Shown here piece by piece: positions 30,726 through 40,786 of a DNA stretch of 64,000 bases. The notes beneath the pieces are model-generated. The model saw only the letters and a program-made list of their open reading frames with translations. It made no database searches and was not told the origin of the DNA. The position numbers and the translations under genes are program-made. Each line of letters opens with the position of its first letter. Positions within the stretch are counted from its first letter, which is position 1. The stretch lies in the sequence record MW248466.1; one strand, given 5' to 3'.

Positions 30726-31893
30726 TTAGATCATATCTTTTACTTTACGTTTTAATTCTATTAAAGCTTTGTTAGTAAATAACATCAAGTAGATATCTGT
30801 AGTCATACGAGATACAATACTTAATGGAGAGAATATAGCTTCGATTTCTTCATCAGGTCTATATTCTGCATAAGGAGATTCATTAGGTGGAGTAACGTCA
30901 GCAATAACTGTTTTACATGCACCGTAGAAACTAATCTTATCACCGATACTCATATCATCTTCATACTCTGTAAAGATTTCAATAAGTACTCCGTCTACTT
31001 TCTCACCTTTAATTTTTTCACTATTAATTTTCTCTACAGCTGGAATATCTACATCTAATCCAGGTAATGTAGATTTATTATCTTTAACTGCATTTTTGTA
31101 TTCTTTATATTTGCTCTTAGATTTATTAATATAACCATTAACCAATTTAGCTAATGTAGGAGACATATTTTCAATATCATCATTATAGTAGATATTTACT
31201 TTTTTAATTTCTCCAGTATATTTAGATCTAACAGCTCTATTAGAAATATCTTGTATTTCTTGTTCAAATTCAGAACCGATTTTATCTAATAAAGAACCAA
31301 TACCTTCATCATCAAATGAATTCTCAAATATCATTAATGGATCTCCTGTACGTACATTTTGACCTTCTTTAACAATATATTGAATATTCGTACTAGAAGC
31401 TAAGTTGACTGTTTTCTTCATAGTAACTTTAGTTGACATCGCTTCAGACATACTATTAGAAATAATAGAACTATCCTCATACGTACCATAGCTTGAAGCT
31501 ACAGCAACTTTAGATAATTTACCAGCAGCAAATTGAATATCATTATTGCTACCAGAACCTGCAAAGTAATTATCATTTTTAGCTAATACTTGCCCTTTAT
31601 TAAATTTATTACCTACTTCAAATTGTGGAGTAAGTTTATTATTTTGATAGAAACCGCCATTAGAGTTCTTAGCAAGTTTCTCAGATATATCAATAACATC
31701 TTTATCTCCATTGATATATTCAACAGTCATTAAACCAGTCTTTTCATTAACAGATAAAACCTTGCCATCTTCTTTAGCTTTAAAAGCAAAAGTATCAGAT
31801 ATTTGATAAGCTAAAGCTTTATCTACACCAGAACCAACTAATGGACGGTCATTTGTTTTAGTAGCGATTAAATGCTTAGCCTGAGTTCCTGTC
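30726..31893 (-). CDS. rpoB: RNAP beta-like subunit, exon 2
   Basis: Frame is open 54 codons upstream of the tracked ATG (TGTQAKHLIATK...). Contains YEDS, GDKISFYGACKTVI and SRM beta motifs. Confidence 0.9.
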
Positions 31894-33195
31894 CGATATC
31901 TTCAATAGAGGTCGTAAATCTCTACCAGTTCTCTTATGAACTTCTTTAAGTTTTCCTTAAAGTCTAGACTATATCTTCACCCTATATTTTCATTATAGGG
32001 GATCACTATTTCGATTTAAGGGATTCTCACCCACTCCATTAACTTGAGCCCTACTCCTGTTGGTATATTTCAATACCCTATGGGATAGTCGTTGAGCTTT
32101 TTCCTAGACAATTTTCGATTTTTTCTTTTAATTTTCCTTCTTTTTGATCTTTATAATTTACTCTTATCAGATCTATTTTTTCATGATTTTCAAAATAGTT
32201 ATCTTTTATTTGGTCATTCTCTTTTAAAGTTTCAAATTTTTCTTTACCATTTTCATATCTAAAAGGTATGAAGTGCTGTTCACCATCAAATTCTATACAA
32301 AGATTATATTCTTCTAAAAAGAAATCAACTCTTAAATAATTTCCTTTTATACTTAAAAGATTATCGAATTTCTTTTCTTTTTCATAAGGTATTTTCATAT
32401 TATCCAGATATTCAGATATTTCTTTAGTACCTTTTGAATTATTGATATCACTACAATAAGGACAGCGATGACCTGATGAATAAAAACTTTCCCAATTCAT
32501 CTTGAATTCTCTTCCACATTCTTCATGTAAAATATCCATTTTAGTTCTACTATTGGAATATGAATTTGAAATTAATTCGTAATCAAATTTTTCTATATAA
32601 TCTTTTACTTCTTTAAGGTTTTTCTTTTTATTAGGTGCACAATGAGGACATCCATAACCCTGTTGAAGGTTACTGTATGTGGATTTGAATTCATTTTCAC
32701 ATAATGAATGGTATATTGATAATTTCTTTTTACTATTTTCATATTCACTCTTTAAAATATAAATATCCTCACCATGTAAGACATTTAATTTTTCTTGTAC
32801 AACTTCATTATCAACCACTCTTCCTGCACATTTAGGACACTTATAACCTTTAATAAAATTTGTTGGTAATACATCGTATTCATAATTACATTTTGAATGT
32901 TTTAGTCTTAATTTATTTTTATATAATTCAAAATCTTTTATGAAGATATACTCCTCATAATGTTTTAATCTTTCTTTACATTTTTTATGATATTCTTCTC
33001 TTTTATTCAATTATTTCCAACCTTTCTTGCGAAAAGCTTGTCTAGGAACTTAGTTGCTGATTACCCAATCTTAATGATTTTTAAGCATATCACGCTTACT
33101 GTTACCAGTTACGTTGTAGCTCATTAAGCTCTAAGGATTTTCCAGCAATTAAATGATTTTATACATATATATTACTATATAAGGGGACAAAATTT
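31894..33195 (-). mobile_element. group I self-splicing intron (1302 nt)
   Basis: P1 exon GGGAU pairs with IGS GUCCC (U-G at the splice site). P AAUUGCUGGAAA 33139-50, Q AAUCAGCAAC 33053-62, R CUCAACGACUA 32086-96, S AAGAUAUAGUC 31967-77, terminal G at 31894. Splicing restores the frame. Confidence 0.93.
32078..33010 (-). CDS. intron-encoded homing endonuclease (zinc-ribbon repeats + DUF559/Vsr-like PD-(D/E)XK domain)
   Basis: Three H..C.....F...G..CP.C repeats; C-terminal LRVDFFLEEYNLCIEFDGEQHF; TTG start. Confidence 0.85.
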   Translation of the reverse strand: MNKREEYHKKCKERLKHYEEYIFIKDFELYKNKLRLKHSKCNYEYDVLPTNFIKGYKCPKCAGRVVDNEVVQEKLNVLHGEDIYILKSEYENSKKKLSIYHSLCENEFKSTYSNLQQGYGCPHCAPNKKKNLKEVKDYIEKFDYELISNSYSNSRTKMDILHEECGREFKMNWESFYSSGHRCPYCSDINNSKGTKEISEYLDNMKIPYEKEKKFDNLLSIKGNYLRVDFFLEEYNLCIEFDGEQHFIPFRYENGKEKFETLKENDQIKDNYFENHEKIDLIRVNYKDQKEGKLKEKIENCLGKSSTTIP

Positions 33196-36100
33196 ATCCC
33201 AATTCTTGGTGAATCTGCATGTCTACTAGTATATGGGTTTAATAATTCTAATGGAGTATATAAAGCTGTATCACTTACATCTTTTTTACTACCATCAGTA
33301 TAACCACGAGTAGATTTAATTTGTGTATCATATGAAAGTTGTCTAACTATCCCTACCTTATTAGAGTCAGGAGTGGATATTCCTAATATACCTTGCATAC
33401 TTTCATCGTAAGAACGAATATCAGGTTCATATGATTGTTCAGAGTTACGTCCAGCAGGACCTTTAAATGTAACAGAAGTCATCTTATCTATTTCTAAGTT
33501 AGGGTTCAAATCAGATACTTCATCTACTGTAGGTTGTTCCATAATAGTTTTAATTAATTGATCTTGTTTAACTGAAATATTCTTAGGATTTTTATTATTA
33601 TAAGAATCTGAATATTCTTTGTAAGCATTAGCCATCATTTTATATAATAATGCGTTGATCTGTTCTGGACCACGTACACGATAAATTCCCATATCATTAT
33701 GATCTCTAGCAGATACATCTTCTAACATCGTATTAGCTAATAGTAACAATTCAACCATATTATCAGGAAGTTTTAAATCTCTTAATACTTCTTTAGTAAT
33801 AGGGTCCATTGCTAAATCCATAGTATTTTTAATACCTTTACCAACATTACGACTGTAGAATTTATCATTGAAATATTCTAAGTAAGGTGTTTCAGTTTCA
33901 AAATCACTGAAGTTGTATTGTGATGTAGGTAATACAGTTAATCCAGACATTAATAAATCAAATCTTAATTTATCAGTAGAATATATTAAATAACCATCTT
34001 GGAATTTAATCTTATTCTTTTTATCATGAATACTAATTCTTTCATTTTCAGTAGTAAATTTATAATCAACTTCATAAAGATCAAGAATATTAGTTAAACC
34101 TTTATAGAAACCTAATAATAGAATTGTAGGTACTAATTTATTAGTAATTTTAACACGTGAAAATGCCATAGTTTTACTAGCTTGTATATTCTTACTAAAT
34201 TTCTTATCAACGACTCCAAAGTCAACTTCATTGTCTAATTTATCAATAATATAGTCAAATATATTCATTTCCATTGACTTAATATTAGATTTACTACATT
34301 CATACATAACAGATTCTGTTTTGTCTGCTAATATTAATTTAGATTTATTAATATTATAACCGATAGGGAAATATTTATCTTGATCATAATCAATCTTAGA
34401 TAAACTAGCACTATCAGAAATCATTCCTAATAAACTTCTTTGGTTAAATATAAGTACATTAGTATCATCTTGGAAATTTAGTATATTTCTAGATAAACTA
34501 TTATAAATAACTGATGTTACATATTTATTATTGATTAAAGAAGCATTACCCTTTTTAACAGATAATTTAGATTTATTTTCAATATAATCTATAACTTGAT
34601 CGTCTTCAATAACTTTCTTAATCCATTCAGTTTCAGCATTTTCTTTATAACCAAATTTTTCTATAATGAATTTATTATAGTTAGTTGTAATCCAAACAGT
34701 ATCAGGTTTATATTTAACGATTGGCCACATCATTAACTGTTTAGTTAATACTTTTTTACCACCATTAAGTTTCATGTATTTACCATCAATAACTTTGGGA
34801 ACATCAAATTTAACATTATGAGTTAAACCATCTGGACTTCTAAATTGAACTTTAACTGTATTCTTTAATGATTGACTATCTGAATTATCTTCAATATTCA
34901 TTTTATTAATAAATACTGGAATATCTTCATTGTCATTAAAGCTCTTCATTATATCAATAAAGTCTTTATTAAATGTTTTTTGCATATAAGAAATATCAAA
35001 ATCATTAGAAGCAATATTGTTAATAGTCTCTTCATTGATATTATTAATATTTTCATTAATTTCTCTATCAATTAATTTATCTTCAGAAAAACTAAAATCT
35101 TCTAAATCATTAAGGTATTCATCTTGTTTCTTAGATAAAGCTAATATCTTTTTAGTATTTTTAAGAGCTTCATCTCCGATACTAGATTTATTTTTAATAT
35201 TTCTCTTGATTGATTTAAATGAATCATTCTTATCCAATACATCTGAATATAAAGTTTCAGTATCAATATCAATTAAATCTTTATTATCATTTAATTCTTT
35301 TTCAATTATCATAGCTATATTATATTCATCATCAACATCCATTTCAGTATTGTCTAATGATCTAATATAACTTATTGTAGAATCTATTTTATTAGATATT
35401 TTTTCTAATTGTTCATCATTTTCATATTCAACTTCATCATTCTGAGATTCAACAGGATCAATTGTACTTACATTATCAAATGCTTTCTTTTTAATTACTC
35501 CATCTACAGCTTCAGTATTGTCATCATCTTCAACTTTACTAATTTCATCAGTATCTAATGCTTGTGTATTAGTGTCAATCATTCTTCTTAATCTTTGTCT
35601 TAATCTCATATTAAGTTTATTATAATCTTTATAATCAAATTTAAACATTATTCCATTATCTAATGAGACAAATAATAAATTAACATTTTGATTTTCACCG
35701 TGAGGTAATTCCTCTTGATTTTTAATCATCATAAATAAACTTGACATGAAATCTTTTGTATTAGGTCTAATAGCTTGTTGAGAAGGTTTATTATAACCAT
35801 CAACATTAATTACATAAAGTAAATTATTATAATCTTCTGTATTATTTAAAGAGTTAAAAGTTGATTTAATTGAATTTAATACAGTATTAAAGTTTTTAGT
35901 CATTAATGATTTATCTTCTAAATCAATAAATTTAGTTGAATCAACAATATAGTTTCTACTTTTAAATAATTTCTCATTTCTTTCAACTCTATACTGTTTG
36001 TAAGATCTAGATTTAATTTCTTTTTGATAATCTGTTATATTCGTTAATAATCTAGTTCTTCTATTTTGAGTTCTATACAATCTTGGAGTATAGATATTCT

Positions 36101-36281
36101 TGAAATTCTGATGATATAATAATCCACTATTTAAGAAATCAGTAAATGAATTTTCTTTAAAACCTTTATAAATAACTAATTGGTCTTTTTTCTTATCTTT
36201 GATTTCTTCATCAATAGCTTTAATTTTATATCCAGATATTGAATAGAATTTAAGATTTTTTAATCTATTAAGATATTTCAA
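33196..36281 (-). CDS. rpoB: RNAP beta-like subunit, exon 1 (spliced product ~1417 aa; probably virion RNAP)
   Basis: TFKGPAG, GILGISTPDSNKVGIVRQL, RHADSPRIG|M (fork-loop and HDDANR-equivalent motifs). The last 12 codons of the tracked ORF are intron read-through. Confidence 0.9.
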
Positions 36282-38839: not shown

Positions 38840-40786
38840 ATGATAGGTTCAAAGATTAGAAAATCATTAAATGAAAAATTTGGGTATCATTATAAGTTTT
38901 TATTAGAAGACTTTAAGAAAGATTATGATTTAAATAATGATACAATTATGGTAACTAAAGAAGCTAGTGATATTACAAAAGAATATAAAATAAAATCATT
39001 AAAGTATACTAAAGACATTGAAAAATTAGATAAAGACTTTAAGAAAGAGGAAGAAGAATTAAATATTAGAAAATCTAGAATTTTTAATTTAGATGAATTA
39101 GGTTTAGATGAAGACCTTAGAAATATCTGTAAGTATATAGATAGTACTACTAAATTAAAAGTAAAAGTTAGAGAGTATAAAAAAGAAAGTAAAGAAAATA
39201 TTGAGTTCTTTTACAAGAATTTTGCTAATTATACTTATAATAGTGTAATATATGATATGAGTAATTTTAAACCATCAACAATTAGATCTAATCAGAAAGT
39301 TATATGCAGAAAACATGGACCTTTCTTTACTACTCCAGTAGATTTCTTTATAAAGAAAAAAGGATGTCCAGTGTGTGAAAAAGAAACAGAGGAAGAAAAG
39401 AAAGACACTAGTTGGAAGGATGAATTCATAGAAAATAACAATAAAAAAATATATCAAGAAGTAAAGGAAGAAAAAGAAAATAAAAAATCTAAAAAAGAAA
39501 AGGTAGATGTGAAAAAAGAAAATAAAAAACTTTTAGATGAAATATTAAATCCACCTGAATTAGGATATTACAGAGAACCGGATAAGATACCTAATAATGA
39601 AAAAGAAAATGAGAAATTCTTAAAGAATATTAAAGCTATAGATAACGATAAAGTTGAAGAATCTAAAGAAGTTCAAAAACCAAAAGAAATTGTTAAACCT
39701 AAATTAAATAAAAAGTCAGTTGATCAAATAATAGGAGACGATAATACTAATTTAGGTAGAAAGATTAAATATATAAATAAAAATATCTACACGGAAAATG
39801 AAAGACAAGATTTCTATAAAAAATTAACTGATCGTAAACATGGTAAAAATAAATATAAGATTGACAAATTCAGACCTAAGACTATCAAAGAAAAACAAGA
39901 AGTAATTTGTCTTAAGCATGGTCCTTTTAAAGTAACAGCTGAAGAATTATTAATTAAAGGCAAACAGTGTCCTAAATGTTCTTCTACTAGCACTTCGATA
40001 ACAGAAACTTTTGTAAGGGAGTACATTCAAAGTTTAGATTTTGAAGTTAATAATTATGAGATAGAAGATTTAATCAGACCTTATGGTGTTGATATAGTTA
40101 TAGAAAATTTAAAATTAGCTATTGAAGTTCAAGGTATTAAATATCATTCATCTGAAACAAGATCAGAATCTTCAAATAAATACCATCAATTAAGAAAATT
40201 AAAAATGTTAGAAAATAAAGGTTATCATTTATTGAATATATATGATGATGAAATCCCTAATAAGAATAAAGGAATTGGCTGGGATAAATTTGGTAGATTT
40301 TTATCTGAATTAATGATGTTTGATAAAAGATTTGATATTGAAGAAATGGATACAAATTCAATAAAGATAGATACAATTAGTTATTACAAATTCAGAGAAT
40401 TCTTTGAAAATTCTAGACAAAATTTTGTTACTGGAGATACAGAGTATAAAGGTGTAGTTTATAAGAATAAATTAATCTCAGTGTTCTCATATAATAAAGA
40501 AACAAGAGAATGTCATAACTATCATACTATGACAAATAATAAATTTGATTTGGAATTAATTAAAAGAAAATACAAAGATTTAAAATTTGTAGTTAAAAAA
40601 GATTCTTATGTAGCGTATAAAATGAAAAGCTATGAAATGTTACCAATAGCAGAAACGGAACCTGACTTCTGTAACTTTTCAAAGACCAATGGAAATAGAA
40701 AAAATAACTATATAAGACAAAAAAGAAAGGATGAAAATGATAAAAACAAAGTATATAACTGTGGAAATATAATTTTTGTATTTTAA
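38840..40786 (+). CDS. free-standing homing-endonuclease-like protein (2 x C..HG.F....CP.C zinc ribbons + Vsr/DUF559-like nuclease)
   Basis: VICRKHGPF...KGCPVC, VICLKHGPF...QCPKC, VDIVIENLKLAIEVQGIKYHS. Confidence 0.75.
   Translation: MIGSKIRKSLNEKFGYHYKFLLEDFKKDYDLNNDTIMVTKEASDITKEYKIKSLKYTKDIEKLDKDFKKEEEELNIRKSRIFNLDELGLDEDLRNICKYIDSTTKLKVKVREYKKESKENIEFFYKNFANYTYNSVIYDMSNFKPSTIRSNQKVICRKHGPFFTTPVDFFIKKKGCPVCEKETEEEKKDTSWKDEFIENNNKKIYQEVKEEKENKKSKKEKVDVKKENKKLLDEILNPPELGYYREPDKIPNNEKENEKFLKNIKAIDNDKVEESKEVQKPKEIVKPKLNKKSVDQIIGDDNTNLGRKIKYINKNIYTENERQDFYKKLTDRKHGKNKYKIDKFRPKTIKEKQEVICLKHGPFKVTAEELLIKGKQCPKCSSTSTSITETFVREYIQSLDFEVNNYEIEDLIRPYGVDIVIENLKLAIEVQGIKYHSSETRSESSNKYHQLRKLKMLENKGYHLLNIYDDEIPNKNKGIGWDKFGRFLSELMMFDKRFDIEEMDTNSIKIDTISYYKFREFFENSRQNFVTGDTEYKGVVYKNKLISVFSYNKETRECHNYHTMTNNKFDLELIKRKYKDLKFVVKKDSYVAYKMKSYEMLPIAETEPDFCNFSKTNGNRKNNYIRQKRKDENDKNKVYNCGNIIFVF

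Follow-up and report, generated by a model that had tools for sequence, protein, structure and literature searches.

The gene for the C-terminal part of the virion RNA polymerase (RNAP) beta subunit of phage MarsHill is interrupted by an insertion whose features support an ordinary mobile phage group I intron. We consider it very probable that this IA-type intron is spliced out to give one subunit of 1417 amino acids (aa), and that an endonuclease encoded in its P6a loop drives homing. The DNA analysed, called the window here, is a stretch of 64,000 nucleotides (nt) from sequence record MW248466.1; the gene lies at positions 30726-36281 (5556 nt) on its minus strand, which correspond with 100% identity to MW248466.1 154726-160281. 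An original prediction, made from the letters of the window, had placed a group I intron in this gene; the observation was confirmed, with every coordinate holding, and its interpretation is supported. The following features of the gene were identified:

33196..36281, minus strand: exon 1, with a TTG start, 1028 codons and the AT of Met1029, translated without stops.
31894..33195, minus strand: group I intron of 1302 nt, from A33195 to the terminal G 31894, seen as a gap against intron-less alleles.
32078..33010, minus strand: intron open reading frame (ORF) of 933 nt and 310 aa, with a TTG start, in the P6a loop.
30726..31893, minus strand: exon 2, with G as the third base of Met1029, 388 codons and a stop.

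The Staphylococcus phage MarsHill is a jumbo phage like AR9 and PBS1, presumed to have uracil DNA, in which several RNAP subunit genes are disrupted by introns and the mature products were predicted via protein alignment (Korn et al., bioRxiv 10.1101/2020.12.14.422802). In the annotation of MW248466.1 the gene is presented as one two-exon joined coding sequence, CPT_MarsHill_161, 'viral RNA polymerase beta subunit', with a note that the exon junction was predicted by alignment to the AR9 protein YP_009283093. Since the record already contains this joined sequence, the intron at this site is annotated and published and is not a discovery. The term 'group I' does not occur in the text of Korn et al., where the intron class is left unnamed; for the same DNA no RNA structure is given there or in GenBank, and the intron ORF is entered as a hypothetical protein. 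The corrections to the record are limited to a 7-nt error in the GenBank junction and to the classification of the endonuclease.

The two exons were searched individually, and the intron-less allele of phage S6 was taken as a proxy for the spliced product; the joined exons were used only for a test of translated-string equality against the GenBank product. Residues 2-1028 of exon 1 are identical to GenBank QQM18076.1, and this exon matched PHROG 38251/3148, 'RNA polymerase beta subunit' (E 1.6e-146), while exon 2 matched the Pfam family RNA_pol_Rpb2_6 (E 1.1e-8) and PHROG 14872 (E 1.6e-91). A tblastn search showed the gene to be homologous to the virion 'RNA polymerase beta subunit' gene of phiKZ. 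As had been stated with the prediction, mechanical ORF calling splits the gene wrongly, into ORFs of 1040 aa (33159..36281) and 334 aa (30726..31730) on the minus strand with the 310-aa ORF between them. The same is seen in the record of phage PALS_2, where exon 1, the endonuclease and a truncated exon 2 are filed as three separate hypothetical proteins.

The borders of the intron were defined by alleles that do not contain it. An uninterrupted gene is present in phages S6, UFV_DC4 and SA1 (4254, 4254 and 4257 nt; 1417/1418 codons), and MAFFT alignment with these three alleles, a check proposed with the prediction, gave a single gap of 1302 nt exactly opposite 33195..31894. This gap cannot be shifted by even one position, because the bases at its edges do not match: exon 1 ends in T but the intron in G, and the intron starts with A but exon 2 with G. 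Read on the minus strand, the last bases of exon 1 are ...ATTGGGAT (ATT GGG AT, up to 33196), the intron ends ...GATATCG with its last base at 31894, and exon 2 starts with GACAGGAACTCAG at 31893 (G ACA GGA ACT CAG). The splice sites could therefore be resolved to the base, as predicted, by the non-sliding gap together with the rules of the U.G pair and of the terminal G. The junction GGGAT/GACAGG falls within a Met codon (AT/G). Exon-by-exon translation gives 1028 aa, this Met and 388 aa, thus 1417 aa in agreement with the approximate length proposed earlier, and the joined reading ...RHADSPRIG-M-TGTQAKH... is identical to the S6 protein over the motif ...RHADSPRIGMTGTQAKH.... The spliced RNA is predicted from the sequence to read ...ATTGGGATGACAGGAAC... 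and to be 1302 nt shorter than the genomic copy.

Both allele types occur in nature, because metagenome contigs of each were found: contigs from two runs join 31893 straight to exon 1, where the 12 bases TCGTATAGGAAT are DC4-like, and another contig carries the endonuclease ORF. The intron-less S6 and UFV_DC4 target around the insertion site reads ...CGTATAGGAATGACAGG.... In PALS_2 (MN091626.1; locus L003:1001-6554) the same intron is located at the same site with 95% identity. The codon for Gly1028 (33198-33200) is GGG in the intron-bearing MarsHill and PALS_2 and GGA in all intron-less alleles and metagenome contigs; with the synonymous GGG in place of GGA, P1 has a G-C pair where it would otherwise have an A-C mismatch. 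Between MarsHill and UFV_DC4, five synonymous differences are found within the 12 nt upstream of the insertion site, which may represent a co-conversion tract.

The deposited product QQM18076.1 (1417 aa; same cluster as the S6 protein) reads ...SPRIGINFTQAKH... at the junction and equals the translation of 36281..33189 plus 31886..30726; both borders are situated 7 nt downstream of those defined by the alleles. A true exon 1 end at 33189 and exon 2 start at 31886 would explain why the protein entry reads exactly in this way at the same length of 1417 aa. The GenBank junction was, however, derived from protein alignment to AR9; it would give the intron a final A and not G, would move the P1 loop into the exon, and yields IGINFTQ in place of the conserved IGMTGTQ. 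The lost M-T-G is encoded by every intron-less allele with the same flanking DNA, and the record of phage Madawaska, by the same authors as that of MarsHill, reads IGMTGTQ. Of the motif residues, R1026 and Q1033 do not vary among 24 homologues, and conservation is at least 90% for D1023, M1029 and H1036. Because the intron would end in A and the M-T-G of all intron-less alleles and of the Madawaska product would be replaced, the GenBank junction is, by allele comparison, wrong by 7 nt and extremely unlikely to be the one used; the originally predicted junction is a small but real correction.

This correction falls in a motif that is among the most conserved of the enzyme. A profile built from 24 full-length homologues was compared with bacterial RNAP beta chains, and the best match was 8i23_C (E 1.1e-18 for the whole chain). 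Over the motif stretch (E 9.4e-8), ...rhaDppRigmqstQskh... is aligned to ...NDDANRALMGANMQRQ... of bacterial beta. By this alignment, the phage motif RHADSPRIGMTGTQAKH corresponds to ...DDANRALMGANMQRQ of bacterial beta, which bears out the equivalence proposed earlier. The split Met corresponds to what we take to be M681 of E. coli beta, in the segment presumably containing R678 and residue 687 of rifampicin cluster III. In QQM18076.1, three residues of this motif are wrong (INF for MTG), and modelling or expression based on that entry would use a wrong sequence. Here again a mobile group I intron has its place in an essential phage gene, within a conserved motif close to the active site; such insertions are well documented in phage DNA-metabolism genes and have more recently been described in RNAP genes of jumbo phages.

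As to the class of the element, an intein or a group II intron was considered, as the DNA gyrase A gene of MarsHill carries an intein (Korn et al.). The exon frame stops 12 codons into the insertion (mechanical ORF end 33159), and the intron ORF is located in a different frame with its own start; for these reasons in-frame read-through is impossible. No match to a group II intron was found in Rfam, neither in the window nor in the region, and sequence and structure are those of group I. The intein and group II explanations can be considered refuted on these grounds, with practically no probability left to them.

For the group I intron, the core elements P (AAUUGCUGGAAA), Q (AAUCAGCAA), R (CUCAACGACUAUCC) and S (GAAGAUAUAGUC) could all be located, together with the arrangement P3-P4-P6 / P7-P3'-P8. 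The original prediction had named P, Q, R, S and P3 as present, and both strands of P3 were found, AUUUAA at 33154-33149 and UUAAAU at 32019-32014, with R at 32096-32083. The elements are as follows, in the order of transcription:

33184..33200, minus strand: P1, exon GGGAU (33200-33196) with guide GUCCC (33188-33184) and loop AAAUUUU, from sequence and Rfam alignment.
33166..33181, minus strand: P2 hairpin, UAUAUA-GUAA-UAUAUA.
33143..33154, minus strand: P3 5' strand (AUUUAA, 33154-33149) and P element/P4 5' strand (UUGCUG, 33148-33143).
33038..33053, minus strand: P6/P6a 5' strand, CU, AAG, then UUCCUAGACAA (33048-33038).
33021..33036, minus strand: hairpin CUUUUC-GCAA-GAAAGG, just upstream of the endonuclease start, from sequence.
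32097..32111, minus strand: P6a/P6 3' strand, UUGUCUAGGAA (32111-32101)-AA-AG, within the last ORF codons.
32083..32096, minus strand: R element, with the P7 5' strand GACUAU (32090-32085), overlapping the ORF end.
32014..32077, minus strand: P7.1/P7.2-type hairpins, GGUAU-UGAAA-UAUACC (32077-32062), stems within 32065-32018, and the P3 3' strand (32019-32014).
31967..32000, minus strand: P8 (CCCUA 32000-31996 / UAGGG 31984-31980), J8/7 and the S element, with the P7 3' strand AUAGUC (31972-31967).
31894..31962, minus strand: P9 (31962-31944), P9.1 (31941-31928), P9.2 (31926-31904) and the tail ...GAAGAUAUCG to the terminal G 31894.

In P1, the pairing of exon 1 with the internal guide sequence GUCCC and its diagnostic U-G was found as claimed: the 5' exon ends in U, paired to a G of the guide (U33196.G33188). 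The intron ends in G, and so do five related introns. P2 reads UAUACA-GUAA-UGUAUA in PALS_2, a compensatory change from U-A to C-G relative to MarsHill, and the partner strand of P4 (Q) is CAGCAA at 33059-33054. In P6a, UUCCUAGACAA is perfectly paired to UUGUCUAGGAA across the ORF, and the duplex 33053-33038 / 32111-32097 has an energy of -20.1 kcal/mol; in five related introns P6/P6a has the same closing pairs and the same AAG/AA internal loop, followed by a stem of at least 9 bp of unrelated sequence. The R element is identical to that of the ORF-less lysin intron of Sepunavirus BE25. An alternative R/P7, formed by CUAGAC at 33046-33041 and GUCUAG of the S region, was rejected, the comparison with BE25 placing R at 32096-32083 and CUAGAC in P6a. 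The ribosome-binding site annotated in GenBank for the endonuclease gene (L001:6259-6262) is 33023-33020, in the 3' strand of the CUUUUC-GCAA-GAAAGG hairpin; the 5' strand of this hairpin could instead lengthen P6a by pairing with CGAAAA at 32117-32112. Such alternative pairing may limit translation of the endonuclease from the folded precursor.

A search with the group I model RF00028 had been suggested as a check. On the region alone both halves of the intron matched, P1-P2-P3-P4-P5-P4' with 22.4 bits (E 7e-4) and P8-J8/7-P7'-P9 with 26.2 bits (E 4e-4, over 32000-31946); nothing was found at gathering score, for which the threshold is 50 bits. The low score is likely caused by the 933-nt ORF in P6a, which splits the match. 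When the records of MarsHill, Madawaska and S6 were searched with RF00028, this intron was also missed because of its ORF, and several copies of 150-195 nt were found elsewhere. Those of MarsHill, all outside the window, are located at MW248466.1 252372-252554, 252187-252353, 253187-253345, 58259-58409 and 58587-58782, the best with 55.5 bits. By blastn, the 5' half of the intron matched 313 phage records and the 3' half 399, including introns of T4, ICP1, T7-like Yersinia phages and PBS1 as well as Kayvirus and Sepunavirus lysin and recA introns. With hundreds of phage group I introns matching both core halves, the intron features are, on sequence comparison, far beyond chance.

Covariation was analysed in an alignment of the 3' halves of six related introns, using the structure P7, P7.1/7.2, P8, P9, P9.1 and P9.2. 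Pair counts were confined to these halves, as MAFFT misaligns P2 between two intron groups in the 5' halves; for the whole intron the phiSA_BS1 locus (L010) was left out, its linear record opening inside the intron. In total, 98.2% of cells were paired, and sliding of the partner strand lowered pairing to 30-48%. Twelve pairs were changed on both sides compared to 4.2 in shuffles (0/500 shuffles reached the observed number), four of them in P9 and six in P9.2. Compensatory changes across six related phage introns support P6a, P8, P9 and P9.2.

Several points weigh against the reading of a spliced group I intron. No Rfam match at gathering score was obtained in the whole window. No clear pairing for P10 was found, and the pairing of the P7.1/P7.2 block is the least certain, loosely modelled part of the structure. 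P7 is invariant in 6/6 introns and P9.1 likewise never varies, so that both are uninformative for covariation; in addition, the shuffle control overstates significance because the six introns are related, and the covariation numbers are support and not proof. Neither reverse-transcription PCR, complementary DNA nor proteomics is reported in the MarsHill paper (Korn et al.), and because no public RNA run contains the stretch, splicing is inferred and not observed. The insertion could accordingly be one that no longer splices, leaving two polypeptides, as at other natural RNAP splits, or a pseudogene; in jumbo phages, beta and beta' are by nature distributed over several genes (Korn et al.). The break, however, falls inside an invariant motif. 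The upstream frame enters the intron for 12 codons and then stops, and the first ATG of the downstream part is located 54 codons past the junction, where a start would lose the conserved TGTQAKH... stretch. All core pairings are intact and kept by compensatory changes relative to the 95% identical PALS_2, and MarsHill is viable and was propagated. Loss of splicing is for these reasons very unlikely, and the group I intron claimed at the outset is carried by the RF00028 halves, the homology to phage introns and the covarying helices.

The intron ORF matched PHROG 559 (E 8e-64), which is labelled 'HNH endonuclease', while no HNH domain or motif was detectable in it by Pfam. Instead, Pfam revealed treble-clef zinc-finger modules, DUF4379 and CapR, and residues 1-190 consist of three repeats of a CxxC-containing treble-clef module, which appear as repeated strand-strand-helix units in the AlphaFold model (predicted local distance difference test, 86.9). 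In this model the three zinc-finger units are followed by a C-terminal domain, for which Pfam and NCBIfam gave only a sub-threshold DUF559 match (E 0.054) and noise. No meaningful match to PDB was obtained for the endonuclease with HMMER, either as single sequence or as profile. The fold of the C-terminal domain was more informative. The EDxHD homing endonucleases have as their prototype I-Bth0305I (PDB 3R3P; PMC3239194), which is encoded in a group I intron within recA of Bacillus phage 0305phi8-36, and residues 192-307 of the MarsHill protein matched the catalytic domain of this enzyme, 3r3p_A, with Z 11.9 and a root-mean-square deviation of 2.4 A over 96/97 residues. Vsr followed with Z 11.6 (1cw0_A) and 10.6 (1vsr), and the next unrelated nuclease folds with Z of at most 7.8; Foldseek gave a probability of 1.00 and a target template-modelling score of 0.68.

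For the intron ORF 25 homologues were found; in the set of 26 compared, no variation was seen at D229, E240, G243, H246, D266 and K269, while conservation is at least 90% at D242 and Q245. The spacing of 17 between D229 and H246 equals that between D196 and H213 of I-Bth0305I, and the E and the last D of EDxHD would have counterparts in the MarsHill enzyme. The N-terminal NUMOD/helix-turn-helix region expected of the EDxHD family is not found in it. Based on the model, the intron ORF can be assigned as a probable homing endonuclease in which three zinc-finger repeats precede a Vsr-like (EDxHD-type) nuclease domain; its membership of the EDxHD family is only partly shown. The present analysis thus adds to the record a Vsr-like (EDxHD-type) enzyme with a different DNA-binding module. 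Near the gene, CPT_MarsHill_164 (~38840-40786, plus strand) is a hypothetical protein with an annotated HHpred match to the mitoribosomal protein mS74 (6HIY_DS). Since the Vsr-like endonuclease domain also gave fold matches to related mitoribosomal chains, another such domain may be present in this protein.

The borders, the RNA architecture with its covariation, the fold of the endonuclease and the occurrence of alleles with and without the intron are thus shown. Taken together, these results suggest how the intron would act; the catalysis, the order of its steps and the activity and target of the endonuclease are what we infer here. The gene would be transcribed as a single precursor, in which the intron would fold into P1-P9, with P1 formed by the exon GGGAU on the guide GUCCC. 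An external guanosine would attack after U33196, and the freed exon would attack after the terminal G 31894. Ligation would then give ...AUUGGGAU-GACAGG..., with the Met1029 codon and the RHADSPRIGMTGTQAKH motif restored in one 1417-aa subunit. By analogy with I-Bth0305I, the 310-aa Vsr-like endonuclease encoded in P6a would cut intron-less alleles near the insertion site in co-infection, and repair of the cut would copy the intron into the intron-less allele.

A survey of relatives by tblastn with the S6 protein revealed four intron sites within 14 codons of the motif RHADSPRIGMTGTQAKH:

After D1023: Madawaska, AH12 and LY01.
Inside M1029: MarsHill and PALS_2.
After G1031: Machias, AH12 and LY01.
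After H1036: PBS1.

The sister phage Madawaska (MW349129.1, L002:4070-4234) does not contain the MarsHill intron and carries, 15 nt upstream of its site, an ORF-less intron of 165 nt, which is well below the usual size of a group I intron. The last base of its 5' exon is U and that of the insert G, P1 is formed by GCGGAU/GUUCGC, and RF00028 matched with 55.9 bits, above gathering. In AH12 (OR455461.1, L014:3385-3782) a micro-exon of 24 nt encoding SPRIGMTG (L014:3547-3570) is enclosed by two short introns. The Machias intron after G1031 (L007:5006-5217) measures 212 nt, the PBS1 intron after H1036 is located at L013:5108-5467, and the LY01 introns belong to locus L015. A rather speculative extension, which we consider unlikely as a whole, is that the RHADSPRIGMTGTQAKH motif, with its four sites, is a contested landing pad for group I introns. 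The flanking ORF-less mini-introns (165 nt in Madawaska, two around the micro-exon in AH12) would persist by breaking the site of a MarsHill-type endonuclease, conferring immunity against homing or interference in co-infection, and among EDxHD-type enzymes the endonuclease would be the first to have a zinc-finger array, and would act on uracil-containing DNA.

Compared to known systems, the intron of MarsHill resembles the T4 td intron, likewise a phage IA-type group I intron with its endonuclease ORF looped out of P6a. Records of T4 were among those matched with the 3' core by blastn. The T4 intron differs in its GIY-YIG enzyme I-TevI and in its host gene, thymidylate synthase. With I-Bth0305I, the MarsHill enzyme shares the intron-encoded origin in a Firmicute phage and the C-terminal catalytic fold, whereas its N-terminal part consists of zinc fingers (DUF4379) in place of NUMOD/helix-turn-helix, and its ORF is located in P6a and not in P5. 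According to Birkholz et al. 2024, as reviewed in PMC12908238, phage PhiPA3 has a mobile intron with a homing endonuclease in a virion RNAP subunit gene, which was studied functionally and targets the intron-less allele of a co-infecting relative. As there described, it is also an endonuclease-carrying mobile intron in an RNAP gene of a jumbo phage; PhiPA3 belongs, unlike MarsHill, to a Pseudomonas chimallivirus lineage.

The closest similarity was found to the Kayvirus and Sepunavirus lysin introns (the I-KsaI intron of phage K relatives, ORF-less in BE25), in which P1-P2-P3-P4 are alike and the ORF is inserted at the same point of P6a. A precedent for splicing among these relatives is fRuSau02, a phage in whose lysin gene the I-KsaI intron is inserted: peptides from both the N- and the C-terminal part of the lysin were detected in its virions (PMC5618024). 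The 3' core of MarsHill, from P7.2 to the terminal G (31894-32062), is 85-89% identical to lysin introns (L008:2501-2664, L012:1501-1664), with 89% identity over the last 171 nt for the ORF-less BE25 intron and about 85% of the 3' core shared with the Sb1_8383 intron, which carries an I-KsaI homologue. The lysin introns differ in their host gene, an endolysin, in the guide GCCC against GUCCC of MarsHill, and in an ORF that encodes an HNH endonuclease or is absent, against the Vsr-like enzyme of MarsHill; the MarsHill intron is also extended at P5 by about 50 nt. Judged by these identities, one ribozyme core is common to different host genes, with different endonucleases, in otherwise unrelated phages. 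Besides the cluster of four sites in 14 codons, the analysis shows the same ribozyme core circulating between jumbo phages and the lysin genes of Kayvirus and Sepunavirus.

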